Source: Epithemia pelagica
Lineage: Eukaryota > Protista > Bacillariophyta
DNA length: 64,000 nt
Direction: 5' to 3'
NCBI GenBank assembly: GCA_946965045.2
Contig: OX337232.1
Coordinates: 2,542,001 to 2,606,000, forward strand
Position numbers and translations under genes: made by a program. Below, in pieces: positions 18,947 to 46,388 of this stretch. The notes beneath the pieces were generated by a model. It was not told the DNA's origin. It did no database searches and saw nothing but the letters and a program-made list of their open reading frames with translations. The stretch's first letter is position 1, and each line of letters opens with the position of its first letter.

Positions 18947-19599
18947 TGTCGCCAATGCAATGCAATACAAGTTTCTTTTCAAAAGAACGACGCTGCTCTA
19001 CAATAAAATTTTGTAGGAGTAGGAGTAAAATATGGTGATTACACATCTAGCGAGCCATTGGAATGGTGCAAAAAACGGACGATTTACCCGCCTGCCCCCA
19101 ACGAGCTTCATCCATCCATAAAAAATGAGCGCCATGTCGGATTTTGATGAACCCGCCGGGTGAGAATGAGATCGAATCCTCTTTAGGCTGTTCCTTTACC
19201 CCCAAGCAGGGGTGAGTGAGTCCCGCGTGATCGAATACTCTGCGCTTGTATTCCCTTACTCACCCCCAAGGCGCGTCGGCTGCTCCCAACTTTGACACAA
19301 ACTCAGAACAACCACAACGCAAACACCACGAGGCCCATCTGGCTGTGGATGTAACAACACCCATGGACCCTCCCAAGTCCAACCGTGTTGTCCATGCTGT
19401 CTCTAACAACCCAAGGGACACTCCTGGCGCTGCAATAGCTGGTGCGCACACTTTCATTCCAAACACAATGCTACCGCGACAAATCCTCCAAACGTACAAC
19501 AATCGTTTAGATTTAGAATCTTGTTTACAAATCTCAACGGACCAAGTTTTCGGTGACAGAACCGACTGCGATCTCTCGGACAGACCGAAACGGCACGTG

Positions 19600-21250
19600 C
19601 CAAGGATGTTTGTCGTAGTGTCTCTTCGCGGAATCAAATCAGTCTTGCGCCGAACGGCAATTTGCTTCGACACTTGAAGCACTTGCGAGAAATTGAAACT
19701 ACGGTACCGCCGGATTGCGAGGAATGGCTTGCCGACTTGATTGACAGGAGGACTCCGTTATGGAGAGACTGTCTCTTTTTTTGCGCTGCGATACGGAGAG
19801 GCGTTGGCAACCCTTGAATATCGCGGTGCAACTGGTAGTTCCGACCATCCACGCGCACACAGCAACGAGTCAAACTTTGAATACACCCGAGTTGCGGAAA
19901 ACTTTGAGATTATTTCGGGTATGGATGGTATTTTATTTGGCGAGCAGCTACGCATGGTCCCGGTGAAGGGATGCTTCAGCAAGGCTCCTCTTGTCGGTTT
20001 GAACGAAGCGGACGTTCAGACGGTTGTACACGATACTCGTCAAGATGCCGTCAATATTTGCAACATCATGCTTGGACTCGACAACAACAAGGAAGGGAAC
20101 ACAGTATTGGTGTGCAGAGAAGGAAATTTGTTTACAAATCAACCTGATCATTCTAGGCCGATTTGTAAACAAATTTTGCATCTCTGCACACACAAACAGA
20201 GTGTGCCTGTGGTGAAGGTCCAAGAGAAACCGGGAGACGCAGCGGTAGACGACAATCGAGTGCACGGTCAACCATTCGACCAGCTGCTCAATACTGTGCT
20301 GTCAAAGCACAAGGGAAACGCCATTGGCGTCATAACGTCTATCAAGAAAACCCGCGTTGCTTGGATTGGGGATGAGGCGGACCGCATTGTGGAGGAGGGT
20401 TCCTTTCTCTCCCTGGAAAAGTTGCGCGAATGCAGGAAGCGATTGTCGACCAGGGACGGGGTGCCATTGTCAAGGAAAACGGAAGAGTACGCACAGCAGC
20501 AAAACGGCGGTATCCAGATGCAAGTTTCAGCAACACCTCATCGTAACGCGAAAAAGGCCCGAATCGAGGTCAAACGAGAATTGTTTTTGTCGTGTCCTTT
20601 CCAAGCGAATGATCTCCTTCATGTTTTCTGCAATCTCATCATTGCTGGTATCCTTCTACACGATCCCGACACCGTGGGATTAAGCCGCAGCGACACGCCA
20701 GTGGACATTCCGGCATCCGTGGTACTTCATTCAGGGGGAAAGGCGCCCATGCTGGAAACCCTGGCGGCAGTCGTTCGCGGGCCGGCAACGAAACCTCGTT
20801 TTTCGGGACTTGCGAGAAAGGTCGCCAGCTCAATGGGTATGGTTCCGTCACCCAAATATTTTCTGGGAAAGCCTTTGCTCTTGTTCGACTTGGAACGTTT
20901 ATTCGAGTGGTGACGCATTCCGGGCATGAATGTGTTGTGAAAATGTACATTCTGGAGTACCATGTGGATGGCACTCGAGAATATACATTTTGATGACAGA
21001 TTCATGATGGGCAAAAGATTATCGATTTCGATTCAAGAAGCTTGGAGGCCGTGTCACGCGAAGAAAGGATGTACAACAAAGTATATCCTGAGCTTGCTCA
21101 ACATGTATGGGTCGAAAGGTTTTGCGGGCGGCACTGCTTGATTCTTCCTTTTTTTTGAAAATGTGCCCAATGCTGATCGAGCAATCCAAAGTAGCCGATG
21201 TTGGCGCACTAACGGTTGACTTGTGTGTACTACAACATGTTGCTTCCTTT
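19600..21250 (+). pseudogene. Frameshifted Crinkler-type REase + kinase-like gene (boundaries approximate)
   Basis: ORF 19741-20913 has NEADVQ...QPDH...VKVQEKP...GQPFDQ (eroded PD-(D/E)xK-type motifs). Downstream shifted frames give LGTFIRVVTHSGHECVVKMY and YNKVYPELAQHVWV...HCLILPFF; stops and frameshifts at both ends. Confidence 0.6.
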
Positions 21251-21333
21251 GGAGATCATGCGAATCCTATACTCGTTACTTCGTCCGTTAGGTAAACAGA
21301 TCACTGCACTTAGTCGTCAAACGCCCAATTCTT

Positions 21334-22560
21334 TCACAACAAACAACAACAAACACAAGTGTCATCCTTCCGTTTCGCACGGTCAATATTGGTTGCCGCA
21401 GTGGCATCTCGGATGCGTCCCATTTCTTTCCATTGGTGATACCATCCGTTTGGTTGCTGCTCGCAGAGTCGTTGAAAGCACCACGAATTCTTGTCCATGA
21501 GCGGCAGTGTCAAACAGGTAGAATTCCCTTTTCCACCAATAATGGCAACTTGATTGGCCACAGTCACCATAATGCAGCCATAAAGACGATTTTCTAGTGA
21601 TGGGAGATTCCAAACGCGGTTGCGGTTCGTATCCAATACTTCCACGGTTCGACGAAATCTTCCCGCCACAACCAGACAGGATCCAACCGCAACCCCTGCA
21701 CAAGAAACATAACCTCTTGTCCCGGAAAGCACCGTATCTGAATGAGTCCTCCTCCAAGTAGATGAGAAGGAAATGACTTTATCATCTTTCATTGCCTTTG
21801 TCTTCCTATTCCTCTTCTTCTTCTTTTTGCCGTTAGTCTTTGCAAATTCCAAATACTCCACCGACTCATCCTCACAGCCTCCACCGACAAAGATGCGGTG
21901 GCCAACGACCGCACTGACATACCTCAATCGTGGAACTTTCATAGATGGTCCCGCAGTGACAGTATGATTCCTAGTATCAATAATATCCACCGACGACAAA
22001 CTACGCCTCTTCCAGCCACCCATTACCACAATATATCGATTGTGAACCGCAACAGCACAACATCCATATCGTCCCGGTGATAATCGACATTTCAATGTTG
22101 TCCAATAACTCTCTTGTGTGGTTCTTGTTGTGCAGAACGATTGTAGCAAATCAGTGGAATCAATCCGTTCCATACAATCCAAATCATGTAGTGCTTCTGC
22201 ATTGCGTCCTCCCATCACGTAGATGCTTCCGTTGCACACAACAGCGGCATGATGCTCACGTTTGTGGTTCATGGGTGGCCCTTCTCGCCACTGCTTGTTT
22301 GATTCTGCCAAGTTCAATACAAGAATGGAATCGACGTCGCCTTGACCTGTTTGATATCCACCCAACACGACGACGGTTTGTCTCTTGTGGTCGTTATCGT
22401 TGTCCTGATCGGGATGATTCAGTACGACTGAAGCATGATCGCGACGCCATCCACCCAAAAGAGGAGGCCAATCGGTTTCATTCCATGCTGCTGTCTCGTC
22501 CAAAAGGACAAGGCCCGACTGCCATGCTTGTTCTTGCAGTGTCATGCTCATACGGTTCAT
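21334..22560 (-). CDS. Kelch-repeat beta-propeller protein
   Basis: Repeated VVLGG/YVMGG/VVMGG/FVGGG/AIIGG units with W.EGPPM..KR..HAAV and AGPSM.VPR motifs. Confidence 0.9.
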   Translation of the reverse strand: MNRMSMTLQEQAWQSGLVLLDETAAWNETDWPPLLGGWRRDHASVVLNHPDQDNDNDHKRQTVVVLGGYQTGQGDVDSILVLNLAESNKQWREGPPMNHKREHHAAVVCNGSIYVMGGRNAEALHDLDCMERIDSTDLLQSFCTTRTTQESYWTTLKCRLSPGRYGCCAVAVHNRYIVVMGGWKRRSLSSVDIIDTRNHTVTAGPSMKVPRLRYVSAVVGHRIFVGGGCEDESVEYLEFAKTNGKKKKKRNRKTKAMKDDKVISFSSTWRRTHSDTVLSGTRGYVSCAGVAVGSCLVVAGRFRRTVEVLDTNRNRVWNLPSLENRLYGCIMVTVANQVAIIGGKGNSTCLTLPLMDKNSWCFQRLCEQQPNGWYHQWKEMGRIRDATAATNIDRAKRKDDTCVCCCLL

Positions 22561-22703
22561 TCCAACAGGTAACCGTCGAACAAAAAGTATAATGAGCAAA
22601 TCACGTGGAAGATTATATTGTGGTCATTGAGAGAACGGAAGTGTCTGCTCGTCATAATAGGACTAATGTAATACAATCGAGCAAAGCACGATGGAAATGG
22701 ACA

Positions 22704-25700
22704 AGTCGGAATCAAAGAATTGAGTCGCTCTTCATGTCGTGATCCCGAAGTGGTCGCACATCCAAATCATTGGGATAGAAACCGCATGGGAGGCGGTTAT
22801 AGATCACCTAGATCTTGGATGATTTCGATCTCAACTGGCATAACAACAACTCCCATCTTGGACAACACTCTAGTCGTAACACTCACTCTTTCTAGATCGA
22901 TCATTTTGAAAAGCAATTCGTCTACATTTACATCTCTATTGCTTCTGTGCACGGAAGACTCCATTTGGGCCAATCTAGTGATCCAACATACTAGCTAGTA
23001 TCGGTGATTGCTTTGTTGGTCCCTCTGATGCAAAAGAAAGAGAATCAAGCCTTACGGGAACAAGAAGAATCGAAGAACTGAGTCAAATCGTTGGATTGTT
23101 ACATTGAAATCGGGACAGAACGACCATTACCGCAAAGGTTTGGAATCATTGATCGTGTGTTGTTGTTTGCCAAACTCGTCTAACTCCATTCATCTATCAT
23201 CAAAATCATCATCATGGATATTACAAGCAATGACAAATCAGCAACAGCGGTCAAGGTACCAACTTTCTCCGGGAAGAAGTCGGACTATCCGATCTGGTGG
23301 ATGAGATTCCGTTCTCATGCCCGAGTGTACAATTTCATACAAGCTCTCTCAGAACAGCCTGATCCTGATTTGCCGGGAACAGAAGATGCCGTGATCGACG
23401 AATCAACAGACTCCGGAAAGAAGCAGAAGAAGGCTCTACATCGGAATGCAATGGCGGTATCCTGTCTCAGCATGGCTCTCCAAGCTGATGACGATCTCAA
23501 GCTCGTCATGAAGTCCATCACAGCTGATTGGCCGGGTGGACAAGCTCATATCATCATCAAGGGGTTGAATCGAAATTATACAAGCGAAAACATTGCGGCC
23601 AAGACACGAATCCGACAAGATATCAACAAAATCAACATGACTGATACCATGAATCCCAAGATTCTCCGCAAGAGGATCTCCCAGATAGAGAATCGACACA
23701 ATCACGAGTTGGGTGACGACGATCTTGTCGCCATTGTGATCGAGAAAGCTGCTCCAGTATACAACACCATCGTAGCCGCCGAACAACGAGCCAAAGGAAG
23801 TCAAGTGACGGCCGATGATCTGATCGACGCCATGATGACACAATGGAATCTCCACCATGACGAAGATGACGATGGCGAAGACGGAACGGAATCGAGTCTT
23901 GATAGTGGTGGATTGTCACTTCAAGCCACTCAAGTCGTCAAGAATGCTCCCATTTGTCAAGCCGTTGGATGCACTAACTCCGAGGTCTCCAGTCCTTATG
24001 TGATTTGCAACTTCTGCCAAGAGCCAGGCCATGGATACTACCAATGTCCTTTGCGCCTCAATCAAACCCATCAAGGTACAGCATTGGTTGCTGGACAATA
24101 CCAAGCTCCAAACAATGGACCTCCTCAGCATCAAACATATCGACCAAACACTCCAGGACAGTATCAACAACGCCCATACGATCCCAATCGCCCAAGACCA
24201 TATTGTGAGGATTGTAAAGTGTATGGACATTCGACACATCGATGCTGGGAGAACCCCAAGAATGCACATCTGCGTCCACCGAACTGGACAAGTCGCCGTC
24301 AACAACAACAAGCTCCACAAGAACCACCACCACAACAGACTCCAATTCCCAATGGAACACAAGATATTGCCACTGTTGTTGCATCAAATTTGACCGGTCC
24401 TCCTGTGAACACCAATAGCGCCACGACTGCTAATCCTTCTCAAGGCACTCATGTTGAAGCGCTTTTAAGCGGAATCGAGTTCCCTTCCGACATTCAGATC
24501 TTGCGTGATCCGAATATCTGGATCGCTGATACTGGCGCAACCCAACACATGACATCCCATGCACAAGGGATGATCAACCTCCACAAACCTGTTAATCCCA
24601 TCGGATTGGTGATGGCCAATGATACAACCGAAACTGCTTCGTTGATTGGTGATTTGCCTGGTATTCGTTGCGATAAACATGGCCACGAAGTCGGCCCAGC
24701 TCGTCTGACTGGTGTGAATCTTCTTCCGTCGGCTGCCTTCAACCTTTTCAGCGTGTCGAAAATGCTGAAGCAAGGTTGGTCTCTGTCTGGATCATCGGAG
24801 AAAATCGTCATCAGCAAAGGTCAGATGCATGTTGAGTTCGATATCGTCATTCCCACTCCAGATGGCATGATTTTCTGCATGTACTTACGTCGTGACACCA
24901 GCAAGACACATCAAGAAATCATCGGCGCGGTACCCAATGTCAACTTCCCAACAAAACGCAACATCATGACACAGCAGCAAGCACATGACCGTCTTGGCCA
25001 CATCGGCAATCATCAACTCAAGGCCATCATGGATCATCTTGGATTCACTCTTGACTCATCTCCAATGGACCAATGTGCCGCATGTGCAGCCGGAAAGGCA
25101 CGTCGAAAGAACTTTCCTCGATCCAAGTCGAAAACCAAACTTGACGACGATTATGATCCGAGCCAAAATCTTGCCGTGAATCGTGTGTATCTTGACATGA
25201 GTTCTGTCCGTCGTACGCCTTCGATGCCATACCCCAAGAAATACCAGTGGTGTATGATAGTACATGGAAAGACCCAACTAAAATTCTCATCTTTTCATTC
25301 CTCAAAGAACGCAATGGTCGAACCCGTTTGCGAATTGTTTCAACGATGGGCATCCAATGGATTGGGTGTGACACATGTCCGACTTGACAATGCCGGTGAG
25401 AACATTCTTCTACAGTCTCGAGCACAGTCTGCTGCGTGGAAATTGGGCATCGAGTTCGAGTTCACCGCGCGCAATACTCCCCAGCAGAACTCCCTAGCGG
25501 AAGTTAGCATCTCTACCATTGCTATGCGTGGACGAGCTATGATGCATCGAGCTAACCTGCCTTTGGAATATCGCAATTTATTGTGGACTACAGCCTTCGA
25601 TACTGCGACTTTATTAGATGGACTCGTCGTCATTGAGATCAATGGTGTTTCTCAGACTCGGTATGAACATTGGTGTGGTCAACTTCCAAAATTCGCCCAT

Positions 25701-28700
25701 CATCTTCGCACATGGGGAGAGGCCGGAACTGTCAAGGTCGCCACAGACACCTCAAAGAAGCTGAATGACCGTGGAGCCCATTGTCTCTTTGTGGGCTATT
25801 GTAAGGATCATGCAGGCGATGTATATCGAATGTTCAATCCAACCACCAAAATGGTCCATATGACTCGAGATGTGGTTTGGCTTCGCCGCATGTATTTTGT
25901 TCCTCCTCCAAGTGTGCCCCATCTCATGGTTAGTCCAGTTGTTGACCCAAGTACTTATGCCGACCATGAAGACCTACCATTAATCGATGACAATGCTCCA
26001 TTTATTGAAATGCTTGAAGACAACAACGCCCAACCAAAGACAGACGCGATCGAGCCCGAATCCAATGCACCCATGGAGATTGAACGACCGACTGTCGAAA
26101 CCATCAATCAAGCCGACGATGCCGACGATAATGTCAGCGTGATGACGTCTGCAACTCCTCGTCGCGAGCAAGTCACTCGCACAGGACGACATGTTCGACC
26201 TCCGAAGCGACTGATTGAAGAATATGCATGTGCTGGCATCGATTTCAGCCGATTGCAACTGAGTAGCGCCGAGGTGCGGTATTATCAAGCTATGTCATCT
26301 TTGGGACATGAAGATGCCGATTTTGATTTCGCTCCTCTAGCTTCTGACGTTCGACACGGCTATCAACATGCCGACATGTATCGAGCTCCTGTATTTCATG
26401 ATGATGCCCCTCTGATCTCCAATGATATCAGTGATGCCTTTCTGTCTACTGATGTCGATCCCGACTATCAAGCTCCTACCTTTCCGATTGACAGTATTGC
26501 CTCAGGATATAGCACAAACTCTACAACGCTTGCACAGGAATGTGCCCTAGTGGGTGCAGGTCTAGGCGGTGGAATCCAGAATACTAAAGAGTTACACGTC
26601 CTGTCCTACGAAGAAGCCATCAATGGTCCTGAACGTGACCAGTGGCTTGAGTCCATTGAAAAAGAGTATCAGCGCATGATTGACAACGGTGTGTTTATTC
26701 CGTGTGCTCCGGAAGATGTCCCTGTCGGAGCTAAGATTCTGAGTAATGTTTGGGCCATGAAGAAGAAGGCGAACGGCACTTTTCGTGCTCGTCTTAACGC
26801 CCGCGGCTATGAACAGGTCGACGGCGAACATTACGACAGTCATGCGACGTTTGCTCCTGTCGCGTCCGAGATGACCATCATGATCATTCTTGTTCTGATC
26901 ATCATTGCGAATTGGGTGGTCCATATTATGGACGTCAAGGGCGCTTTTCTCCTCGGCGATTTTGAAAAGGACCGCAAGATGTGGATGACCATTCCGAAAG
27001 GAATGGAATCCAAATATCCGCCCGGTTGGTTGGTGTTTCTGGGAAAGACTCTCTACGGAACCAAGCAAGCCGCTCGAGCCTTTTGGAATAAGGTTCAGGT
27101 CGTGATGCAGCTCATTGGATTTCTTCGCAATCGCGCAGACCCTTGTCTTTATTTCGCCTGGACTACGTTCGGATTAGTGATTTGGCTGTCATGGGTCGAT
27201 GACTTTTTGATTTGTGGCTCTGAAGCCGGTGTCCACCATTCAAAGGAAGCAATGAAGGCCCATTTCGACTGTGATGATTGTGGTCCTATGACCGAATATA
27301 TTGGGTGCAAGATTGACATCGATCGGACCAATCGCCAGAGCAAGTTGAGTCAGCCCGTGTTGTTGAAGAGCTTTCACGATGAGTTTGACGTACCGATTCC
27401 TTCACAGCCGTATACAACTCCTGCAGCACCTGGAGAAGTTCTTCGCAATGACGATGGATCCCCCAGTTTGACTTCCAAGCAGCAGTCTCTCTATCGTAGC
27501 GGAGTTGGAAAGTTGTTGCATCTTATGAAATGGACTCGACCAGATATTTTGAACTCCGTCCGTGAATTGTCGAAGTTTATGAAACAAGCAACGGAGAACC
27601 ACCTCAAGGCAATGTACCGCGTCATGCGGTATTGTATGGACACTTCTGAGCGCAGTAAAACACTCCGTCCGGTTGGTTGTTGGGATGGTCGCAAGGACAG
27701 TCTTGACTTTGTCATCCGTGGTATCAGTGACTCCGATTTTGCCAAGGATCCCGAACGCCGCCACAGCGTATCTGGTATTTCAGTTTTCTTGCAAGATGCT
27801 CCCATATCTGAATCTAGCCGTATGCAAGACTGTGTGACTCTATCCGTGAGTGAAGCCGAAATTGTTGCAGCCGTTGAAACAGGTCAGAGGATGTTGTTTG
27901 GAATGCGCGTACTGGAACAGATGGGACTTACCGTTGCCAAACCCATGATTCTACACATGGATTGCAAAGGAGCTCTTGCATTGACACACTCATGGAGTGT
28001 GGGCGGTCGTACTCGCCATATTGATGTGAAGTGGCATTTTTTGCGTGAGATGAAGGAAGAAGGACTCATTCATACAGTATGGGTCCACTCACCTGACAAC
28101 AGCGCCGATCTTTTCACCAAGAATTTGTCTGGTCCTGACTTCAAGCGTCACAGTCTCGTCTATTGCTCCGATCTTGATCCCAACGTTCAGGCCGATGACG
28201 ATCCCACAAACACTGCCAGTGATCTTCCATGCGCTCACGTTGAACCCATAGCTGGATCCGAAACCGCATTGATGGTCCATCAAGGCCCGATTCCATATTG
28301 GATTCAATCCTTTCTTCGCTCTCAATCGACTTCCAAGTGACCAAGCCCATTCATCCTCATACCACCACAGTGAAACGCGTCATCTTCATCGATAGCATCT
28401 GCCCTGAACTGCAATCTCAACACAAAACCAAAATAACATCAGAATCCAACAAAATCCAACAACAACATCAACAACAAATAATCATCATCATCATCATCAT
28501 CATCACATACCGACAATAACAAACACATCGAAGTCAGGCAGGGTATCTTTCAACGCACACGCAACACAGTTCTCACATCATTCTGCATTCGTCAAAATTT
28601 ATGGCATCAATGACATTCGAGCGACACAATTAGGCAGGGTGTCGGAATCAAAGAATTGAGTCGCTCTTCATGTCGTGATCCCGAAGTGGTCGCACATCCA

Positions 28701-28924
28701 AATCATTGGGATAGAAACCGCATGGGAGGCGGTTATAGATCACCTAGATCTTGGATGATTTCGATCTCAACTGGCATAACAACAACTCCCATCTTGGACA
28801 ACACTCTAGTCGTAACACTCACTCTTTCTAGATCGATCATTTTGAAAAGCAATTCGTCTACATTTACATCTCTATTGCTTCTGTGCACGGAAGACTCCAT
28901 TTGGGCCAATCTAGTGATCCAACA
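22704..28924 (+). mobile_element. Full-length Ty1/Copia LTR retrotransposon, 6,221 bp, nested in the giant element
   Basis: 285-bp LTRs 22704-22988 and 28640-28924, apparently identical except the first base (AG vs TG); purine tract AGGCAGGG before the 3' LTR; single intact gag-pol; no TSD. Confidence 0.95.
23214..28340 (+). CDS. Copia Gag-Pol polyprotein, 1,708 aa, catalytic motifs intact
   Basis: Two CCHC knuckles, protease WIADTGAT, HDRLGH...CAAC, integrase (YLDM, RLDNAGEN, PQQNSLAE), RT (MDVKGAFL, WVDD), RNase H (SDSDFA, SEAE, MDCKGA, ADLFTK). Confidence 0.96.
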   Translation: MDITSNDKSATAVKVPTFSGKKSDYPIWWMRFRSHARVYNFIQALSEQPDPDLPGTEDAVIDESTDSGKKQKKALHRNAMAVSCLSMALQADDDLKLVMKSITADWPGGQAHIIIKGLNRNYTSENIAAKTRIRQDINKINMTDTMNPKILRKRISQIENRHNHELGDDDLVAIVIEKAAPVYNTIVAAEQRAKGSQVTADDLIDAMMTQWNLHHDEDDDGEDGTESSLDSGGLSLQATQVVKNAPICQAVGCTNSEVSSPYVICNFCQEPGHGYYQCPLRLNQTHQGTALVAGQYQAPNNGPPQHQTYRPNTPGQYQQRPYDPNRPRPYCEDCKVYGHSTHRCWENPKNAHLRPPNWTSRRQQQQAPQEPPPQQTPIPNGTQDIATVVASNLTGPPVNTNSATTANPSQGTHVEALLSGIEFPSDIQILRDPNIWIADTGATQHMTSHAQGMINLHKPVNPIGLVMANDTTETASLIGDLPGIRCDKHGHEVGPARLTGVNLLPSAAFNLFSVSKMLKQGWSLSGSSEKIVISKGQMHVEFDIVIPTPDGMIFCMYLRRDTSKTHQEIIGAVPNVNFPTKRNIMTQQQAHDRLGHIGNHQLKAIMDHLGFTLDSSPMDQCAACAAGKARRKNFPRSKSKTKLDDDYDPSQNLAVNRVYLDMSSVRRTPSMPYPKKYQWCMIVHGKTQLKFSSFHSSKNAMVEPVCELFQRWASNGLGVTHVRLDNAGENILLQSRAQSAAWKLGIEFEFTARNTPQQNSLAEVSISTIAMRGRAMMHRANLPLEYRNLLWTTAFDTATLLDGLVVIEINGVSQTRYEHWCGQLPKFAHHLRTWGEAGTVKVATDTSKKLNDRGAHCLFVGYCKDHAGDVYRMFNPTTKMVHMTRDVVWLRRMYFVPPPSVPHLMVSPVVDPSTYADHEDLPLIDDNAPFIEMLEDNNAQPKTDAIEPESNAPMEIERPTVETINQADDADDNVSVMTSATPRREQVTRTGRHVRPPKRLIEEYACAGIDFSRLQLSSAEVRYYQAMSSLGHEDADFDFAPLASDVRHGYQHADMYRAPVFHDDAPLISNDISDAFLSTDVDPDYQAPTFPIDSIASGYSTNSTTLAQECALVGAGLGGGIQNTKELHVLSYEEAINGPERDQWLESIEKEYQRMIDNGVFIPCAPEDVPVGAKILSNVWAMKKKANGTFRARLNARGYEQVDGEHYDSHATFAPVASEMTIMIILVLIIIANWVVHIMDVKGAFLLGDFEKDRKMWMTIPKGMESKYPPGWLVFLGKTLYGTKQAARAFWNKVQVVMQLIGFLRNRADPCLYFAWTTFGLVIWLSWVDDFLICGSEAGVHHSKEAMKAHFDCDDCGPMTEYIGCKIDIDRTNRQSKLSQPVLLKSFHDEFDVPIPSQPYTTPAAPGEVLRNDDGSPSLTSKQQSLYRSGVGKLLHLMKWTRPDILNSVRELSKFMKQATENHLKAMYRVMRYCMDTSERSKTLRPVGCWDGRKDSLDFVIRGISDSDFAKDPERRHSVSGISVFLQDAPISESSRMQDCVTLSVSEAEIVAAVETGQRMLFGMRVLEQMGLTVAKPMILHMDCKGALALTHSWSVGGRTRHIDVKWHFLREMKEEGLIHTVWVHSPDNSADLFTKNLSGPDFKRHSLVYCSDLDPNVQADDDPTNTASDLPCAHVEPIAGSETALMVHQGPIPYWIQSFLRSQSTSK

Positions 28925-29122
28925 AATTGGCTTATTTCCGGGTTCGCGCACGCTACCCTCGTAGGAGTATATAGGTGTAAAACCTCATACTCCTAGCAAC
29001 AAAACTGGGTAGAAGTACTCTTGAGAATATGAATGGATGTGAATACTCCTAACTTTGAAACTGCAGCTGTCACAATAGAATATACATTTGTTTTCCCTCT
29101 AGGCACCATAATGCCATCTATC

Positions 29123-29697
29123 TTACTTTGCTTTCTTGGTCGTCGTCGTCGTCTTCTTTTTAAGTACCCGTGCTTTGCGAAGGAGAGTCTCCAAGTCATC
29201 GGATTGCGCCAATTGTCCCAATTCCCGACATCCACCACTCCATATGCCTCCACTGAACACCATTGGGAGACTGGTGGCACCCGATTCCCCTTCCTTGGCC
29301 AATTCGACTCGCACGGCGGATTCTTGGCCTCCCCACAATAAGAACCATTCGGCACCCAATTCCTTTTGGACAAAGTCGTATCCCGTCGATTCCAAGAGTT
29401 GGACCGCTTCACTACGAAAGGGACTTCATCCATAAGTATAAATCAACGCCTGATTCTGTTTCTTCTTGTCGGCTTGGAGTTGGGCCACGGCCGCTTGTGG
29501 ATCTTTCTCCGATCCCAACCGAGTGGCCTGAATCCCAGCTTGTGCCTTGAATCCGTATGTGTGTCGCAACAAATGCATTCCTTGTGCGGCCTTTTGAATC
29601 ACGGGATTGGGAGCGTACGCATGGGTCGCAGAGACTGAGAAGATCAGAGACACCAAAGGGCCGCCACGACGGCACTCATACTCACGAACACAGCCAT
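29123..29697 (-). pseudogene. Glutaredoxin-like pseudogene with a plastid-type presequence
   Basis: LIYTYG*SPFRSEAVQLLESTGY...GATSLPMVFSGG...GGCRELGQL...LETLL: Grx fold with an in-frame TGA at 29426-29428 and a frameshift in the signal peptide. Confidence 0.78.
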
Positions 29698-36450: not shown

Positions 36451-36705
36451 GCGACCGAATCGTCGGTTGCACGGCACAAAAACGAGACGACGACGACCAG
36501 GACGACCGTAGGACCATCTATTTCGAATTACAACCTCTGGAGAGAGACCAAGGTTTGTTTGGTCACGTGTCACAGTATTTGGAATCTACATATGTTTTGT
36601 GTGGAATGGAACTCTCTCCTTCCGACTCCAAAGCACTTGACATTTTGGTTGTAAAAGTGGTGTCTCTTCGTTCGCAGAGAATACGGATCCTGTGCTCAAT
36701 CTAGC

Positions 36706-37765
36706 TCAGCCGCTTTGCTTTGCAAAATGCTCCTGAAAGACTTTTATGGGTGTCATTTCACCATCATTGAGCTCTATCTCACCAACTTGGTCCAGCTCCA
36801 CAAGCGCCTGGATGTCTTTATCGTCCCAAAACATACCAGTCCAGCCAGGAATCTCTTTGAACTGCGCGGAAGCGCGTTCTCTTGGGTTGTCAATAACCTC
36901 TTCCATTGGAAGGATTTTGACACCACCGTTGATAGCGATCATTTCATTCGCCCATTCTCTATCCTTGGTGAGAATTAGTACATTCACTGTCGCCGCAAAA
37001 GCGGCAGTATAGAGTCGACCCACAAATTCATGATTCGCTTCGGATTGAGGTAGGTCGTCAATGATTATTCGAGGCCCTAGCTTGTACGAAGGATCTAAAT
37101 TGAGTGCGAACGGAGGGTGTGCCATAAGATTGGCAGGTTCGCCAACGGAAGGCCGAAAGCAATTCATTCTTTGAATCATTTCAGAGATGCTCCCCATTAG
37201 CTTTTCTGCAGTTGATTTGGGTTCCGTCTCCGAGGGAGGTCTCACAGACGCGACCAGGATGGAAGCAATGTGAGGCGCTGCCAAAGGTGCCGACATTTGT
37301 TTTGCAAAGCTTGTCGCAAAATCAAGACTTCCTTCTGCCTCAATCATAATGGCACGGTCGGGTCGATGGGCATAGTCTCCACGTAATAAATACATTGCGG
37401 ATGTAGTTTTTCCGCAGCCAGAGACTCCGTAACAAACAGTTGTTTGACCAGGGAACTCGTGGAAGGCACTTTTGAGAAACGCCTTGACGCTACGGCTCCG
37501 GACAATCTCCTTTCCGATCAGGGACCTCACCGAATATCCGCCGCGACTTGGACGCATCCTCCAGATATCTGTATAGTGATAACCATCTTGTTGGGCCCTC
37601 GACATTTTGAAGGAACCATTCCATCCTTCTTGAAGATAAAAAGGGTATATCGTTGCTGCTTCCCGCGGCTTCTGCTCCGAGTAATAACTGCGACCGGAAC
37701 GGGTCGCGGATTAAATGCGTGCTTGTTGTTCCATATAGCGAGAAGTGAACTCTGCGCATGGGCAT
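36706..37765 (-). pseudogene. P-loop NTPase (AAA/STAND-like) gene with one frameshift near 37510
   Basis: Walker A GVSGCGKT and Walker B IIIDD. The N-terminal frame (37490-37798) and the NTPase frame (36706-37605) overlap out of frame; CTCCTTTCC here vs CTCTTTCC in the paralogue. Confidence 0.72.
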
Positions 37766-38130
37766 GGTTGTGATAGAGAGTATCGTGATCGTTGGCAATC
37801 AAACGGTCTATATTATACAACTTATTACAGACATTCTGTGGCATCATTGTGCTTGACACAAACAAGTTCGTCCTCCTTTGTTGGCTGTGGTTGACGTGGA
37901 ACCACTCTTGTTGTTGTTCTTGTTTTTCTTATAGTGGTGGTGCCGTTTCCTTTGGTGGCACGGCAACAACAACAACAACAACCCGACGGCTGCCCTCCGT
38001 GGAACGAAGAAGAAGGAATGACAAAGTGCGGTGTCGTACGAATCCTAATTCGATTGGAGAGGAACAACAACAAGACAACTACCTGGGGAATCGGCGACAG
38101 TCGTTGTCCCGCCAGAACAATCCGGACAGG

Positions 38131-41004
38131 ATGCCATCTCCCAACAACAACAACAACCAGGACGACGACGAGGAACAACCAAAGCGACGACAAGCTGCAA
38201 ATGATGATGATGATGATGGTGAGCCTGTGACGAAGCGACCACGCATCACGAATGACAGTCGTAGCAAACCAAAACCACAACGACAACAAGCCACTTTGAC
38301 GTCCTTTTTTCAATCCAAGAAACCACCAAAACCAAAGCAACCACCACAACAACAACAAGACGCCAAATCCAGCAGCACCAGCACCAAGTCGGAAAGTACT
38401 ACAACACCCTCCATTCCACCAGACGAACCAGAATCGAAACCAGGCAATAACAACAAGAAGGAGTCCACACAACCACCACCAATCATTTCCTCTATGACAA
38501 CTACCACCAGTGACACGACGGCACCATTGTTGTCGTCGTCTTTGTCTTTCTCCAACTCACCCTTGGTACCACCTCCCTTGGTGACTCCCGTACCCGATCC
38601 GATTGTCCCCACAATTGTATCACCCAATCCTCGAGTGGAATGGAAGTCCTTGCACGATTCTCATGTCTTGGTACGCATCGACCGATCGTCGACGTCCTCA
38701 ACTACCAGTGGTGGCAACAAGAATAAATTGGCCGCCTTGGATTTGGATGGAACCTTGGTGATTTGGGCGAGTTCCTTTTCGGGATTTTGGCCCAATCAAT
38801 TGACCCATTTCAATCTGTGGTCGTCGACGGTCATTCCGCAATTGCGGGCCTTGGTCGATGACCATGGCTACCAATTGCTCATTGTATCCAACCAAGGAGG
38901 CATTCAATCGGCCCATTCGGGCAAAAAGGCCACCTTGGTCAAACATGTGATCAATTATTTGGCGCATGAGCTCCAACGACCCTTGCAAGCCGTCGTGTCC
39001 ACCAAGAGTCCCAAACGATATGCCGCCACATCCTTTCACAAACCGTCCCCCAAACTCTGGAAGGTGGCCCTGGAATCGTCGGGGTTGATTCAACCGACCA
39101 ACAAGAAGGAGCAGAAATGGAATTGGGCCGAGAGTTTTTTTGCGGGCGATTCGGCCGACCCCAACGACGACCAAGGCGGGGTCGATGCCAAATTTGCTCA
39201 AGCCGTCTCTGACGAGTATTTATCAAAGGAAGGAGTGACCTTGCAATTCTTTACTCCCACGCAATTGTTTGGACCCAGTGATGAGGAACGGCGATCTCCG
39301 ACGTTGACAGGACTCACGAGTGTCGATCCCGTGCCACCCGCCGCCTGCCAAACGCGTGCGGCCTTGCTGGGAGGATACTTGTCCGGACCCCTCCTCTTGC
39401 TCTTGTGCGGTGTCCAAGGGAGTGGCAAATCCACCGTTTGTCATGAATTGATCGAGGCAACCAAACAAAATCCAAAGCATTTGACCCAGTGGGTGCACTT
39501 GAGTCAAGATACCATCAACAATGGCAAACCTGGCAAACGAGAAACGGTCGAGGCTCGGACCCGACACGCCTTGGAACAAGGCTTGTGTGTCGTGGTGGAT
39601 CGCATGCATTTGGATGCCACACAACGACAGTATTTTGTCGCCGTGGCGGAATCACTGGACATTCCCGTTCATGTCCTGGCATTGACGCCGCCGCAATCCG
39701 TCGTGGTACATCGGGTCCGACATCGAACCAATCATCCGGGCAAGGTCCAAGGACCGAGCGGAGTCAAATCGACCCTGCAATCCTTGCGTCACTTGGTTCT
39801 ACCCACGTATGCGCAGGAACCAGGCTTGACCTTGATTCATGTGGCCAGCACTCCCCGGCAAGTGTCGCAGCTGGTCGACGTGTATCGTAACGTGCGAGCA
39901 TTGTCCTCATCCGACACTCCAAATACAAACAACCCGAATTTCGGTAGCAATAATACCAACCGACGCACCCTGGCGACACGAATTCCCTTGGCGTCGACAG
40001 AGGCCGGGGACGATGACCATGACAAAAACAACCACAACGACGACGACGACAAAAACGAGCAAACGTTGACTCTACCGATTCTAACCTTGGGAACCATGGG
40101 CATTGGAAAAAAGAAGACGGCAGACGCAATTCGCGAGGCGATTGCGGCAGAATGTCAGGCCATTGATACGGCACCCACGTACAAGAATGAAGAACAGGTC
40201 GGCGAAGCGCTCTCCCAACTCGACCCGACTCATGAAAATGTCTTTTGTATTGCCAAGATTCCCAAATCCGTCACGCAACCCGAACAAGTGGCCGTAGAAC
40301 TGGACGCTACCTTGACGAAATTGCAACGATCATCGGTTCATCTCTTGTTGTTGCATTGGCCCTGTGATGTCATGGCGGCGGATACCTTGTCCGCCGTCTG
40401 GAAGGCCATGGAAGCATGTGTCCAGCAAGGCAAATGCCGAGCCTTGGGAGTGTGCAATTTCAATGGTGCAGCCTTGACGACCTTGCTCGCGTCGTGTACG
40501 ATACGGCCCGTGGTCAATCAAGTTGAACGGCATCCTCTGTTGCCGCAATGGGACTTGATGGATGTGTGTGCCCGTCACAATATTGTTTTGCAAGCTCATA
40601 CACCCTTGGGACAAGGCCGCGACGAATTGCTCGCTCATCCCGTGATTGTCGACCTGGCGACCCAGCATGGCAGCAACAATGGCAATCCGCTGTCGCCGGC
40701 GCAAGTGGTACTCTTGTGGAACCTTCAACAAGGATGTGCCGTCGTACCCAAATGCAGTAGTCCCCAACACTTGAGGGAATTGACTCGAGTCATATACGGC
40801 AACGACAAGCAACAGAAAGAGTTTGTTGGGTGCTTGTCTCCCGCTGAGATGAAACGGTTGGATTCCTTGACCATGACGACGGCATCCGACAGCGACGCCA
40901 CACTGGCGTCAACAACGACCACACGATTTGTGGCTCCTCCCTTCATGTATGGGACACAATCCTATTGTTGGGGAACCCGCATGCCTCGTCGTCGCAGCAA
41001 GTGA
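38131..41004 (+). CDS. PNKP: Polynucleotide kinase 3'-phosphatase (HAD phosphatase + P-loop kinase) fused to a C-terminal aldo/keto reductase, ~957 aa
   Basis: ALDLDGTLV, IVSNQGGI, FHKPSP, FAGDSA (PNK3P); CGVQGSGKST and VVVDR (kinase); IDTAPTYKNE, AKI, LLHWP, LGVCNF, NQVERHP, AHTPLG, VVPK (AKR). Confidence 0.88.
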   Translation: MPSPNNNNNQDDDEEQPKRRQAANDDDDDGEPVTKRPRITNDSRSKPKPQRQQATLTSFFQSKKPPKPKQPPQQQQDAKSSSTSTKSESTTTPSIPPDEPESKPGNNNKKESTQPPPIISSMTTTTSDTTAPLLSSSLSFSNSPLVPPPLVTPVPDPIVPTIVSPNPRVEWKSLHDSHVLVRIDRSSTSSTTSGGNKNKLAALDLDGTLVIWASSFSGFWPNQLTHFNLWSSTVIPQLRALVDDHGYQLLIVSNQGGIQSAHSGKKATLVKHVINYLAHELQRPLQAVVSTKSPKRYAATSFHKPSPKLWKVALESSGLIQPTNKKEQKWNWAESFFAGDSADPNDDQGGVDAKFAQAVSDEYLSKEGVTLQFFTPTQLFGPSDEERRSPTLTGLTSVDPVPPAACQTRAALLGGYLSGPLLLLLCGVQGSGKSTVCHELIEATKQNPKHLTQWVHLSQDTINNGKPGKRETVEARTRHALEQGLCVVVDRMHLDATQRQYFVAVAESLDIPVHVLALTPPQSVVVHRVRHRTNHPGKVQGPSGVKSTLQSLRHLVLPTYAQEPGLTLIHVASTPRQVSQLVDVYRNVRALSSSDTPNTNNPNFGSNNTNRRTLATRIPLASTEAGDDDHDKNNHNDDDDKNEQTLTLPILTLGTMGIGKKKTADAIREAIAAECQAIDTAPTYKNEEQVGEALSQLDPTHENVFCIAKIPKSVTQPEQVAVELDATLTKLQRSSVHLLLLHWPCDVMAADTLSAVWKAMEACVQQGKCRALGVCNFNGAALTTLLASCTIRPVVNQVERHPLLPQWDLMDVCARHNIVLQAHTPLGQGRDELLAHPVIVDLATQHGSNNGNPLSPAQVVLLWNLQQGCAVVPKCSSPQHLRELTRVIYGNDKQQKEFVGCLSPAEMKRLDSLTMTTASDSDATLASTTTTRFVAPPFMYGTQSYCWGTRMPRRRSK

Positions 41005-41899
41005 CATGCAATCGTGGGTTTTGGAAAGCCAATGGACCGTATTAGAATCGTTTTCGTCCATGGATGAAGGTTTCACCAATAGCATGAGAAGGGAGATTTG
41101 GAAGACACAACAAAACATTAGTGCGTTGATACATGTGTGTGTGCACAAGCAGGTTGCACCCACATCCCAGCCTTGGTACAAAAAAGAAGAGGCAGGGAAT
41201 CTCGTTTGCCCATCTTTTGGAGAAAACAAAGAGAAGCACTCTTGAGATTACCCAAACTATGAGAAAACTTGTTCTTCTATAGATTGTGGATACTCTTTGG
41301 AGTCGTCGTCGTCCTGGCGCTACTATACTAGATTGGCATCCTCATCCGCAGAGTCTCCTCTCTAGGAGGACATGCTGCTATACTATGGGAGCACACATCC
41401 AATCACTTGTATCGCAAACGACTGCATGCCATACACAAGGCTCTCTGGTCTCATCATCTCTCTCTCTCCTATCAGGAAACCAAAGGCACTCCCAACCCAG
41501 CCGGTGGAGCGGGAATTGGATCTGCTCCAGCCGCGTTCGGTGTCGTGGCTGTCTTCTTCTTTGCCGTGTAAAGGTCCGAGGGCGCAACCTTCTTGCGCTT
41601 GTTGTCTCCCAAGACTGTTTTCGACATGAATATGCCATCACAAACTGTTGCTGCAACGGCAAAGACAGGTTCCCTGGTGTGTTGTTGGTCCAATACTCGT
41701 TGGGATTTTGGAGTAACCTTATAGCTGTTTGACGAAAGCCATGCGACCATTTAAGCTGGGCTAGGAGAGTCATGTATGTGGTCGCACCGAGTTTTGAATC
41801 GTCGTCATTGTGACGAAGGATGACGCAAGATAGAACTCCCTCTCGAGTCATGATACCTGAAGAAAGGACGTCTGTGCTTCAGACGCTGACGAACATTGT

Positions 41900-42347
41900 G
41901 GAAAACCCTGCCAACATTGGTCGAGGATGGATTGGTTGTGCGGTGCGAGAAGCGCCTTGGACGTGGTCCATTCCACTGCAGTTGAAATGCAAACGGAATT
42001 CCCAGACTATTTTCCGACGACAGACATGAATTCCAGCAGCTCTTTTGGGTGCTTTGTTTGCATGCTACTTGACCCATCCCTTTGACACTGTGAAGACATG
42101 CATGCAAGGCGACATTGAACGAAAAACCTACGGAATATTCTCGCAAACGGCGCAGACGATTTGGAATCAACATGGATTGGGTGGCTTTTATCGAGGATCC
42201 ACCTTTCGCAATGCGCGACAAGTACGTGCCGTTTTTATTATGGAACTGATGCAAGAAAAGGTTGGTATGCTGTTGTATCCATCGGCATATGGTGAGATGA
42301 AACTGACGACTCGGCCAACAACGTTGTCCCACACACATGGGCTATAG
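41900..42347 (+). pseudogene. 5'-truncated mitochondrial carrier family gene fragment
   Basis: LTHPFDTVKTCMQ (PX[DE]XXK signature) and HGLGGFYRG; upstream frame broken; only the last repeat is present. Confidence 0.72.
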
Positions 42348-42583
42348 CTACTTGTACTCTTCTTATTCTAGAGAGGGCGTACCGCGCCATAATACATGAA
42401 CCCATTGTAGAACGTGTTTTATTTCTTTATGTCCCTTGTCCTTTGATACTTATCCCACCTACAGCAATAGTGCCCACAAATTATCTTTCGACGGGACTGG
42501 AAGTTCTGTAATGGATCAATGGATCGCTGGGGCTGCCTGCTACCACGGAAACCGCATTAAGCGACAAGAAACGGCGTGACGTT

Positions 42584-43375
42584 CTAATGGCGGCGGCGGC
42601 GGACACTGCGCCCGAGCTGCTGGCGTTCTCCGCTTCGACGACGAGTACGTCGCTCGACACCCTGCTCCTCACCTTCCCCGTCACCTTGCGCCTCTTGCCG
42701 CCGCTGCTGGACTTGTGCCATTTGACTGCGAGTACGAAGCCCAACACCCTGCGCTTCACCTTGCCGGCCTGCACCTTGCGTCTCACCTTGCACGTCACCT
42801 TGAACTTGATCGTGTCCGCCACCTTGTGCTTGATCTTGCCCGCCACCATACTCGCCAACAGTCTCTTCGTCTGAAGACGAAGAGACGTGGCCTTCACGTC
42901 GAGCCAGAACTTCCTGAAACTCTTCAAGTACCCCAATGAGCTGCAATGTTACTCGGAGACTTCGGTTTGACCGAATATCTTCGAAGGATATTCCTCCGCA
43001 AGCAATGCGGCGCAGCATTGTTATTGTATTAGGCCGGTCGTTGTCATGCCGGAGAAGGCGCGCTCGATTGAGTTGTTCGTAAAACGACGAGATCAGCGAA
43101 AAGAAGCTTACATAATACCCTTGACTTTGTCGGGCCAAATCACCCAGAAAGTCAAGATTGGCTGGCAGGATCAATGCCTGGAAGGTCCTGTTCGCCAGGT
43201 CCAAATTTGCTGCTGCTCGCGCTGCTGCCGCCATCTTCTCCTTTTTACGCGCCTCTTTCAGTTTCCGACGGAACTCTATGCCACGTGCAGAGCGCTTTCC
43301 TTCCTCCTCCGAATCCCAACCCGCAAATGCAACCTTTCGTGATGTTGGAATATGAACAGGAGGCGCTGTGGACAT
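42584..43375 (-). CDS. Hypothetical protein with a Gln/Gly 4-aa repeat tail
   Basis: ATG at 43375, helical central part, then GGQDQAQGGGHDQVQGDVQGETQG repeats; no family recognised. Confidence 0.45.
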   Translation of the reverse strand: MSTAPPVHIPTSRKVAFAGWDSEEEGKRSARGIEFRRKLKEARKKEKMAAAARAAANLDLANRTFQALILPANLDFLGDLARQSQGYYVSFFSLISSFYEQLNRARLLRHDNDRPNTITMLRRIACGGISFEDIRSNRSLRVTLQLIGVLEEFQEVLARREGHVSSSSDEETVGEYGGGQDQAQGGGHDQVQGDVQGETQGAGRQGEAQGVGLRTRSQMAQVQQRRQEAQGDGEGEEQGVERRTRRRSGERQQLGRSVRRRRH

Positions 43376-44279
43376 ATTGCGTAAGGCTGCAGGCAACCAC
43401 TTTCGATGGTCTGTCACAGGCGTTTTTTTTTTTTTGTGAGGGCTTCGACCAAACCCGACTCCATGTGTTCACTCATACAACCACCCGAATGTGATTCGGA
43501 TGATGGGCAGACGACTATGTCATTCATGACTGAATCCAAGACTCAGATCCAATTTGCGATGGATACTCCAATGGAGTCGACTTGGACTCCAGAGATACTA
43601 GGGGTAGCTATGATGGCAACCAAACTGGAGTCGACATGGATTATACTTGATGCAATCAAGTAAGAACCTAATAGATGCGTGGTCCCGATTGTACTCAATC
43701 CTAGCTACTGAGAGATAGCACAACTATGTTTGGCTAGGTGTTAGTGACATAGTTGCTACTCTCACTAGAGGACGTGGGGAGATGTTTCGCGTGGGTTGGT
43801 TAGTTGGGCGTGATTCTGACGTGGAACAGCGTGGTGAAATGGTTTTTATTTAATGGATTGATAGAACAATGAATGACCGTTCTTCGATCATTGTTTTTCT
43901 TCGGGGCTGAATGGTTTTGAATAGGGGTTGGCCCGGCGTTTTTTGCCTTACATGGGAAGGTTTTGGTGTAAAGTACTGAATTTCGACTCTTGAGCTAAAA
44001 AAGTTTTTTCTAGTCTTTGATGTTTTTCCACCCCCAGACCCCCTTAGCCTGCCGGCTTACCCGACACGTTCATTCTGAACTCAGTCGAATACGCGATATA
44101 TTAAATATGGTGAAGAGCTTAGGGAATGGCTTTGTTGTCGATACGGATATCTTTCGACCTCCTGATGGGCAAGTCATACTACTTGGCAGTTCCAATTTCC
44201 CTTCCGAATAAAAAAGATTCTGTTTGAAAGTAAGATTATTGCTATGGCATCGTTGAACTGGTGTGCAATAGACTCGCAC

Positions 44280-44956
44280 CTCTACGCTATATGCATTGCA
44301 AATTGCCCAGTCATATGGACGAGCAAACTCCAAACATCCATTGCCCTGAGTACAATGGAAGCCGAATACAACGCGCTAAGCGAAGCTTTGAAGTCGGTCC
44401 TTCCCCTACGAGAACTCCTGACCCATGTCGCAAAAGGAGTGGGATTAAGTGACGACTACACCACAACATTCAAGACTACCGTATGGGAAGACAACGCTGG
44501 AGCGTTAACCCTTGCAAATATGGAACCAGGTCGAATCACGCCCAGATCAAAATATTATGCTGTGAAAACCCATTGGTTCCGATCCCATCTAAACGAGCGC
44601 CTAACCGTTGTCAAAGTGGCAACGACGGAACAACGCGCGGATATTTTGACCAAAGGATTGACCCAAACCACTTTCGAGCACATCCGGAAGCTCCTTTGTG
44701 GTTGGTAAGGCCTTCACCATTTCATTTCCATTCCACAATACATCTCATTACATGTTATCTCTCATCCGATTGCTCCTCTGAGAGGGAGTGAAAGGACAGT
44801 GCGACCTAATGGAGACTCCAAAGGGACGATCCATAGGTTCAAGGCCAGCGTCGCAATCGAATGACGCACCCTCACCCATTTCCACTTACGTATTAGGACC
44901 TACCGAGTTTAAACTGATTTACAAGTCATAATTTTACAAACCAAACCCTCCTTTCA
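44280..44956 (+). mobile_element. 3' fragment of a third Copia family: RNase H end, PPT and 168-bp LTR (44789-44956)
   Basis: CPVIWTSKLQTSIALSTMEAEY...WEDNAGA...RADILTKGL; PPT GAGAGGGAG; LTR with inverted ends TGAAAGGA...TCCTTTCA. Confidence 0.88.
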
Positions 44957-46388
44957 GTCCATGGGTGTTGTTACATCCACAGCCAGATGGGCCTCGTGGT
45001 GTTTGCGTTGTGGTTGTTCTGAGTTTGTGTCAAAGTTGGGACCGATTTGGAGGATCGCGCCTTGGGGGTGAGATAGAGAATACAAATCGTGTATTTTATC
45101 GCTAGTCCTCATTACTCACCCCCGCTGGGGGGTAGCTTTTCGGAAACGAAAACTGAATCGTGACGTCACATCATATTCTTGTTTTGGCGCGAAATGCCAT
45201 CCTTGCGCTCAACGAAACCAAAGTATGCTGAAACAATGCAAACGGACAGAGGACGCACCGACCGTTGGAGTTGAACGCCTGCATGCCATGTCGAACGCCT
45301 GTCTGACTGATTCGAAACTGTATGCAAATGGTACACTAGCAGTGGGAACTAATATCCCTAATGTGATTTCAACTTTCGTAAGAGCACTAAGGTTTACGAA
45401 AGTTGGTACCAACTTTCGGAAGCCCGAAAGTTGAAAACCACTACAAGCTGAGTTCAGACAGAATGTTCCTGTCGTAGCGCTCCAGTAGGAAATCTACGTA
45501 ATACGCGCCAGCCATCTTTGTTAATATGGCCCTTATAATTATGCCTCTGTTGTGCAAAGTACTTCCGAAACTCGACAATCTCGCGTTCCCCCAGAAAAAC
45601 TTCGTTTTGTACGAGACTATCGTGCGTGGGGTGCGTCCGATGATCATGTTATTGTGGATGATGCTGATGCGTTGAACTGTTGCCCCATTGGTGATGGTCC
45701 AACAACACCCTAAGGGAGCTGGATGCAGCTCGGCAACAGTTCAACAGGTCGGGACGGCCCTCCACCATGGTCAACACACTCGACTGTTTTTTCGTAATTT
45801 TTGACGAAATCCTAGCGTTCGGAAGAAATCCTACATAACACTAAAGTTAATAAAATATTTATTTCAGCCACTAGGAAGTCGCTAGTCGGACACTAATAAC
45901 GCAGAACGCTTTCCAGGATTACTCCTCTGGTACAAATTCTACAGGAGTCTACGACAGGAACACACTCCCTGAACTCAGCTTGTATTACCCAGATGTGTGA
46001 CGTCAAGTTTCAGTTTTCGTTTCGGGAAAGTCAAGGAACAGCCTTAGAAGTAGATAGATATTCAAATGATAGTCATGAGACTGGTTAACTCAAAGTACTT
46101 CTAGAGTTACAGTTGGCATTTCGGCCTTAAGACTTAACGGTAGATGCGTTGAGCACTACACATTGGACATATACAAATTTGAGCGGAAAGATTCAACGCA
46201 TGGTTCGCTGGATGTGTAATCACCGGTACTAGGAGTACTCCTAAAAATGTGAGACGAACTACCTGCATAGCTCTAGCTCTAAAGGTATAGAGTTAGCTAT
46301 TCAGCAAACGTCACATAGGGTTAGGGATACCGGTCACCACATTCTTTTCGTTGCATGATCAAAAGAGGAGGCGACGAGAGAGATCAAA

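Follow-up and report, generated by a model that had tools for sequence, protein, structure and literature searches.

The 64,000-nt window analyzed here (contig OX337232.1, C5 in our numbering, positions 2,542,001 to 2,606,000, from the diatom Epithemia pelagica) contains a 25.9-kb unit, referred to below as the giant, which is bounded by the two ends of a non-autonomous AcademH-type DNA transposon and is filled with host DNA and retrotransposon DNA. All of the host pieces can be traced to one 0.8-Mb stretch of another contig, C3. We see about an even chance that the giant arose by Pack-type capture inside a resident non-autonomous AcademH-type copy, which would have grown in place and later lost its target site duplication (TSD) by deletion. 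The structure is real and its family is of a known type; its notable features are the TSD-less junction and the origin of its cargo in a single region.

The two termini lie where the preliminary description of this DNA had placed them. At the left end the dinucleotide TA (19197-19198) is followed by CCCCCAAGCAGGGGTGAGT, starting at 19199, and at the right end ACTCACCCCCGCTGGGGGG (45114-45132) is followed by TA (45133-45134). With up to three mismatches allowed, the terminal 19-mer occurs four times in the window, versus an expectation of 0.03. The inverted blocks that had been reported are also real: an 85-nt block is 100% complementary between 19284-19368 and 44957-45041, and a 30-nt block (19246-19275 and 45056-45085) is 90% complementary and includes a perfect 17-mer. 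The 85-nt block is the conserved portion of the long terminal inverted repeat (TIR) in all copies of the family. No further family termini were found between 19300 and 44950, even by relaxed searches, and so neither end of the giant has a nearer partner, which had been named as an alternative.

The giant splits a Harbinger-type miniature inverted-repeat transposable element (MITE). Its flanks are GGCTGTTCCTT (19186-19196) on the left and GCTTTTCGG (45135 onward) on the right, and the TTA duplications of the split MITE are found at 19183-19185 and 46044-46046. The empty site can be read from two intact copies of this MITE, at loci L033 (contig C8) and L032 (contig C10), which have the sequences GGCTGTTCCTT-TA-GCTTTCCGAAACG and GGCTGTTCCTTTT-TA-GCTTTCCG. 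Because both show one TA, the empty site holds exactly one TA, as in the earlier reconstruction, and the 25.9 kb represent one insertion relative to the MITE, bounded by a genuine pair of transposon ends. A second MITE (545 bp, TIRs of ~47 bp), which has dozens of 80-99% identical copies, is nested in the right part of the split MITE at 45438-45987.

The ends had been described as distinct and of no recognized family, a view that the genome does not bear out. The 20-mer TACCCCCMAGCRGGGGTGAG is present at 107+98 places in the 60.5-Mb genome, versus 0 for its reversed control, and two variants of the terminus can be distinguished, A (…CAAGCAGGGG…) and C (…CCAGCGGGGG…). We built a census of paired ends from the first 100 of the ~205 termini, and read the flanks of 24 other copies that have both ends. 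These copies range from 119 bp to 33 kb and every one of them has a direct duplication of 9 or 10 bp; no target preference is visible across the 24 TSDs. The TIRs of the family are ~170-300 bp long. The tiniest copies, L026 (C2:496697-496815) and L027 (C4:3481250-3481370), are 119-121 bp long, being no more than an A-type tip joined back to back with a C-type one, and have TSDs of 9-10 bp, from which it appears that ~60 bp per end is enough in cis for transposition.

Copies that encode a transposase, for which a search had been suggested, were also found. The autonomous copies of 7.8 kb (L001, L002, L029, and L030) encode a DUF6589 protein of 1,650-1,750 amino acids (aa) and a DEAD/Helicase_C protein of ~700 aa. 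L001 and L002 are 99.96% identical, indicating that the family was recently active. The helicase open reading frame (ORF) is 698 aa long with DEAD and Helicase_C domains, and its solved relatives all belong to the RecQ family. The large DUF6589 proteins of the A-type and C-type subfamilies share 50% identity over a stretch of 1,500 residues. The protein has 468 relatives among 1.84 billion representative proteins, and its neighbors in the atlas fall into DUF6589 clusters from Basidiomycota and Mucoromycota. Its core was modelled (predicted local distance difference test, pLDDT, 87), and the model aligned best to the P element transposase (Z 9.0 over 353 residues) and Hermes (Z 8.9), and next to retroviral integrases, ISCth4, Tn5, and RAG1. 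A Foldseek search of the PDB with this core returned nothing significant, the DDE fold emerging only with an exhaustive aligner. As modelled, the core has a DDE fold of the RNase H-like type, into which a large domain is inserted.

AcademH elements make TSDs of 9-10 bp, according to the summary in PMC10045372. In its TSD length, its separate helicase gene, and its TIRs, the family matches AcademH; its DUF6589 protein, with a predicted fold closest to the P element and Hermes transposases and to integrases, is a candidate Academ-type transposase. A Mutator-like (MULE) assignment, prompted by the 10-bp TSD, was rejected since a Pfam scan to E=10 gave only DUF6589 and a helicase gene is present.

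These copies also bear on the role of the TA, which had been taken for the target duplication. In all 24 the TA is found at both ends, with the duplication on one side of it and the C-run on the other, so it is the terminal dinucleotide of the element itself, lying inside the 9-10 bp TSDs. A TA duplication of the Tc1/mariner type was rejected on the same grounds, as TA is not the duplicated target in any other copy examined. Read in this way, the preliminary description would imply a new TIR superfamily with a TA duplication that was built for multi-gene cargo. The TA on both sides of the giant and the restorable target would agree with this, but TA lies inside the longer duplications of all other copies examined, the predicted enzymes and the TSD length of the family fit AcademH, and host DNA is present in no other member examined; we consider this version scarcely credible.

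The arms of the giant are, by sequence comparison, both ends of a 1,088-bp non-autonomous A/C-type subfamily, being 98-99% identical to those of the copies L017-L020, each of which has a TSD. The left arm has 3-7 mismatches over its 308 bp relative to this subfamily; the middle 600 bp of the subfamily are absent from the 64-kb window. The decamers that flank the giant, GCTGTTCCTT and GCTTTTCGGA, agree at 6/10 positions, meaning that there is no TSD, and the giant is the only TSD-less copy among the 25 formed by it and the 24 others. No homolog of the transposase or helicase is encoded anywhere in the window, which upholds the earlier view of a non-autonomous element. The giant and its immediate surroundings are composed of the following features, to which an ordinary copy of the family is added in the last line.

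19183-19196, plus strand: TTA duplication (19183-19185), then the left TIR of the Harbinger-type MITE up to its 11th nt (GGCTGTTCCTT); identical to the L033 and L032 termini.
19197-19504, plus strand: left arm, A-type terminus TACCCCCAAGCAGGGGTGAG, 308 bp; 97.7-99.0% identical to the arm of the 1,088-bp subfamily and truncated at 19504.
19502-19631, plus strand: satellite piece serving as filler, 130 bp, period ~443 bp, separated from block A by 48 bp of unassigned DNA; 98-100% matches in many tandem arrays (e.g., C4:472453-473906).
19680-22704, plus strand: host block A, part one, with a 330-aa ORF and a Kelch-repeat gene (21334-22560, minus strand); C3:4148721-4151662, 92-96% identical.
22705-28940, plus strand: complete Copia-type long terminal repeat (LTR) retrotransposon within block A; 300-bp LTRs 98% alike, 1708-aa polyprotein ORF; absent from the C3 source.
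28933-29789, plus strand: host block A, part two, continuing across the Copia element; C3:4151694-4152544, 96% identical.
29810-29953, plus strand: host piece A'; C3:4168010-4168155, 98% identical; 7-bp microhomology TCGTAAG to block A.
29963-32226, minus strand: truncated LTR retrotransposon (2.26 kb), one 210-bp LTR and ~2 kb of interior; 95% identical to L042.
32224-37120, plus strand: host block B, with an 826-aa ORF and a 171-bp tandem repeat in three units; C3:3774960-3779528, 98-99% identical.
37113-43404, plus strand: host block C, with a 957-aa ORF; C3:3810573-3816876, 94.7% identical; 8-bp microhomology GAGGGTGT to block B.
43471-44090, minus strand: high-copy 620-bp repeat; 98.5% identical to L043.
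44088-44280, plus strand: host piece D; C3:3360097-3360283, ~91% identical.
44282-44956, minus strand: second LTR retrotransposon stump, 675 bp (170-bp LTR and 505 bp); 97.6% identical to L037.
44957-45134, minus strand: right arm, C-type terminus TACCCCCCAGCGGGGGTGAG, 178 bp; three mismatches and one 5-bp deletion relative to the 1,088-bp subfamily.
45135-46046, plus strand: rest of the split MITE, including the TTA duplication and the TIR on its right side; second MITE nested at ~45438-45987.
1547-2819, plus strand: ordinary non-autonomous copy of the family, 1,273 bp including both terminal TAs; perfect 10-bp TSD TATCGTCCGT.

The interior is thus a patchwork whose joins have microhomologies of 3-8 bp or short filler. 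LTR-element DNA amounts to ~9.2 kb (the whole Copia element and the two truncated elements) and host DNA to ~15.4 kb, in line with the earlier estimate. The host DNA forms two main blocks of ~4.0 and ~11.2 kb that are 92-99% identical to C3 and contain intact ORFs; the parent copies whose existence had been raised as a question were found elsewhere in the genome, all of them on C3. In the 2.26-kb LTR stump the LTR tip exactly abuts piece A' and the cut side meets block B through a 3-bp microhomology, ATC, while the LTR tip of the 675-bp stump exactly abuts the right arm. A Pfam search of the ten largest interior ORFs identified Kelch, Copia pol, and polynucleotide kinase/phosphatase (PNKP)/aldo-keto reductase domains and no tyrosine recombinase, in agreement with the preliminary description. 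The giant resembles Pack-TYPE elements in having a transposase-free interior of host DNA with sources elsewhere, and departs from them in having no family duplication at its flanks.

The C3 sources of blocks B and C are ~31 kb apart. Between them, a 663-bp direct repeat that is 99.7% identical (C3:3779519-3780181 and C3:3809808-3810470, or L038 6560-7222 and L039 1236-1898) brackets ~30 kb of DNA opening with a Plavaka-like TIR. Since the C3 spacer starts with such a TIR and is bracketed by a repeat, B and C were probably captured as one block.

Two of the cargo ORFs can be compared directly with their C3 counterparts. The 957-aa ORF (38131-41004), a polynucleotide kinase/phosphatase with an aldo-keto reductase, is intact and 96% identical to a 969-aa gene on C3, with a ratio of non-synonymous to synonymous divergence (dN/dS) of 0.23. 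The 826-aa ORF (32831-35311), which has no Pfam match, is intact in the giant and carries a frameshifting 326-bp deletion in the C3 copy, so the relocated ORF may be the sole functional copy. The Kelch-repeat gene of block A belongs to a family of dozens of 74-78% identical copies, which cluster close to the ends of contigs C6, C9, C10, C11, and C13 in a pattern like that of a subtelomeric family.

Host DNA has been captured between the ends of the giant; its transport as a unit is a separate matter, and we infer the following order of events with growth in place. A copy of the 1,088-bp subfamily would have inserted into the left TIR of the Harbinger-type MITE, 11 nt inward from its tip, with the 7.8-kb autonomous copies supplying the predicted DDE-fold transposase and RecQ-like helicase in trans. 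An LTR retrotransposon would then have integrated 178 bp from the right end of this copy. Subsequently its interior may have been broken and repaired, once or several times, with copied DNA (two host blocks from the 0.8-Mb C3 stretch and scraps of repeats) joined by microhomology, and further LTR elements may have inserted and been partly deleted. Such a history would leave 308 and 178 bp of the original copy with the termini intact, and the unit would in principle still be excisable by the family transposase.

The last step that we propose is the loss of the expected 10-bp duplication, GCTGTTCCTT, from the right flank. Insertion with a TSD of GCTGTTCCTT would yield the arrangement TAGCT…TAGCT, the two motifs being 12 bp apart, and a 12-bp slippage deletion between them would produce exactly the present junction. 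The 5 bp lost from the right arm are a further deletion in the history of the giant.

Growth in place appears to be the norm for this family, based on the fact that all five other long copies examined have grown by nested insertion. The largest of these, a 33.2-kb copy on C17 (C17:1180253-1213430, L064-L067), has a perfect 10-bp TSD, CGCAAGCTAC, and is an autonomous copy with a split transposase gene. Its insert is a 25.3-kb TIR element, probably of the Plavaka type, with the ends CGTCTAAGG/CCTTAGACG and a 3-bp ATG duplication. The insert contains a 1,003-aa RING-finger ORF along with 105-bp and 170-bp satellite DNA that extends over kilobases. A 10.25-kb copy on C8 has a perfect TSD and a nested Copia element inside, and L003, L004, and L005 are 1.8-kb elements carrying inserts. 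We considered the C17 and C8 copies as carriers of cargo and rejected both, since nested transposons account for them, and we likewise rejected host cargo in L003 (7.2 kb, with a TSD), whose 5.4-kb insert is a high-copy repeat. No other locus spanning the 19504/19505 or 44956/44957 junctions, or repeating the mosaic, was detected in this genome. Movement of a Pack-TYPE element after capture is recognized from at least two copies or from a presence/absence polymorphism, and no second copy of the giant was detected in this genome. With no sibling copy or shared junctions detected, no TSD, and other long members that grew by nesting, the depiction of the giant as a transposon that moves multi-gene blocks is not supported.

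Several observations weigh against capture within a resident copy. The exact loss of one TSD copy is an extra rare event, and it happens to make the MITE look perfectly restorable. One 0.8-Mb source on C3 is unexpected if several independent repairs took place on C5; the single-region origin fits better with one event involving multiple template switches, or with assembly while the element was on C3. Furthermore, blocks A and C differ from C3 by 4-8% (synonymous divergence, dS, 0.06-0.2), whereas the arms differ from sister copies by 1-2%. As the cargo is more diverged than the arms, capture after insertion is awkward, unless the true donors were other paralogs.

These points lend some weight to the proposal that the patchwork was built within an AcademH copy on C3, and that the 25.9 kb were then excised by the family transposase and end-joined at a break in the MITE via the TA; with end joining in place of normal strand transfer, a 10-bp duplication would not have arisen. 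We rate this as possible, if less probable than growth in place. Both termini are intact, the ~60 bp per end that the 119-121 bp copies show to be enough in cis is present, and the autonomous copies look active, judging from L001 and L002. The boundaries of the insertion are the exact termini and one target TA, as capture by end joining would give. For independent events at a C5 site, an origin of all host pieces in one C3 region would have a chance probability of roughly 10^-3, and the sole TSD-less copy is also the sole giant copy with host DNA. Conversely, neither a second copy nor a trace of a donor site was found, and the C3 source loci examined are free of family termini; unpaired family ends are located on C3 near 3,499,222 and 3,656,986. 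End-joining capture of an excised element is seen in 0/24 of the other copies, and the largest copies without sign of later nested growth are only 7.8 kb. The full course of events, in which an AcademH element gathered ~15 kb of host DNA from one region, was excised as a 25.9-kb unit, and was end-joined at a TA elsewhere without a TSD, we regard as rather unlikely.

The flanking decamers allow yet another explanation, namely that two copies inserted separately at neighboring 10-bp targets, GCTGTTCCTT and GCTTTTCGGA, with 2 bp between them in the MITE, and later recombined or were rearranged into one unit that keeps the outer end of each. While this predicts the observed flanks exactly and without any deletion, it requires two hits within 12 bp in a family whose 24 TSDs show no target preference, and no inner ends or remnants of a 22-bp spacer survive. 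We believe such a double insertion to be highly improbable.

The chance that the giant is an assembly artefact, in which 25.9 kb were misjoined through repeats at a locus that really holds a short element, is similarly slight. The read data from four runs are in the form of short contigs, none of which bridges the 25.9 kb, and the only piece that spans a junction, an exact 154-nt contig covering 19070-19223, enters the element by just 25 nt. However, a 120-nt contig found in two of the runs covers 19600-19719, and the points at which the two arms are truncated recur at no other locus. The two contigs lend weak support to two of the junctions. Misassembly is unlikely because the flanks of the nested Copia element are contiguous in the C3 source copy and the remaining internal joins are between single- or low-copy sequences. 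No loose end corresponding to the empty site was present among those listed in the short-contig data.

Additional features of the family were noted. Its termini share a motif in which GGGGTGAG(T) precedes its reverse complement, (A)CTCACCCC, by ~40 nt, with a conserved stem and a variable loop. The motif is present in the window at 19209-19266, 45065-45122, 1559-1614, and 2750-2807, and in the ends of L001 and L029; folding z-scores range from -0.9 to -5.2, and the motif could be a DNA hairpin or a pair of binding sites. L001 (C4:2025227-2033035) and L002 (C4:3401457-3409265) are in opposite orientation and their target duplications are swapped, AGTGACCGG lying beside one end of both copies and AATGGAGCG beside their other ends. 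This arrangement bears the apparent signature of a 1.37-Mb inversion; either L001 recombining with L002 or an inversion-type transposition may have produced it. On C1, copies of the same truncated family end with the same flank, three or four at a time, occur in both orientations over distances of 0.1-0.3 Mb (C1:419688, 483586, and 515451; C1:701820, 931421, 955538, and 973095), which appears to indicate segmental duplications of large size, direct as well as inverted.

In plants, Pack-MULE and Pack-CACTA elements provide well-documented cases of genes captured between transposon ends (PMC8903248, PMC6379663); in the literature examined, we found no such case reported from diatoms or for Academ elements. 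The giant shows that a helicase-associated DDE family can come to bound multi-kb blocks of host DNA with intact ORFs on another chromosome, and so provides a concrete way for genes to be duplicated and relocated in a diatom. The only feature that ordinary models do not predict is the absence of a target duplication. Should it reflect host end joining of an excised element, it would bear on how very large elements integrate; should it be a mere secondary deletion, the locus would be an ordinary old and much-rearranged copy. If the giant did move as a unit, it would be the first Pack-type Academ element to relocate whole genes and a natural instance of DNA excised by a transposase and integrated by host repair.

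Among known systems, the giant is in the size class of the fungal Starships and other giant cargo transposons (PMC11162782, PMC6431247) and, like them, has intact host-type genes enclosed by defined ends. Unlike Starships, the giant has no tyrosine-recombinase captain, is a one-off patchwork rather than a conserved gene set, and gives no evidence of transfer. Mutator-like elements, including an active MULE of Phaeodactylum (bioRxiv 10.1101/2023.01.02.522487), are similar in their 9-10 bp TSDs, TIRs of ~200 bp, and tendency to contain foreign DNA, although the transposase of the family described here has no MULE or SWIM domain and is accompanied by a helicase gene instead. Plant Pack-MULE and Pack-CACTA elements are likewise non-autonomous TIR elements that hold mosaics of chromosomal DNA from several source loci elsewhere. 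They belong to other superfamilies, however, and the giant differs in that its blocks are 4 and 11 kb long with whole ORFs rather than small exon fragments, and in having no TSD and no second copy that could be found.

The closest counterpart is AcademH (Kojima 2020, Mobile DNA 11:15; cited in PMC10045372 and PMC10799480). In contrast to AcademH as described from animals and fungi, the host here is a diatom, and the giant is a non-autonomous copy that is packed with host DNA and has no target duplication. AcademH elements share with this family their TIRs, their 9-10 bp TSDs, and the combination of a large DDE-type transposase (predicted as such here) with a separate superfamily 2 (SF2; DEAD/Helicase_C) helicase gene, and they are reported from the Basidiomycota and Mucoromycota, the groups in which DUF6589 is most common.

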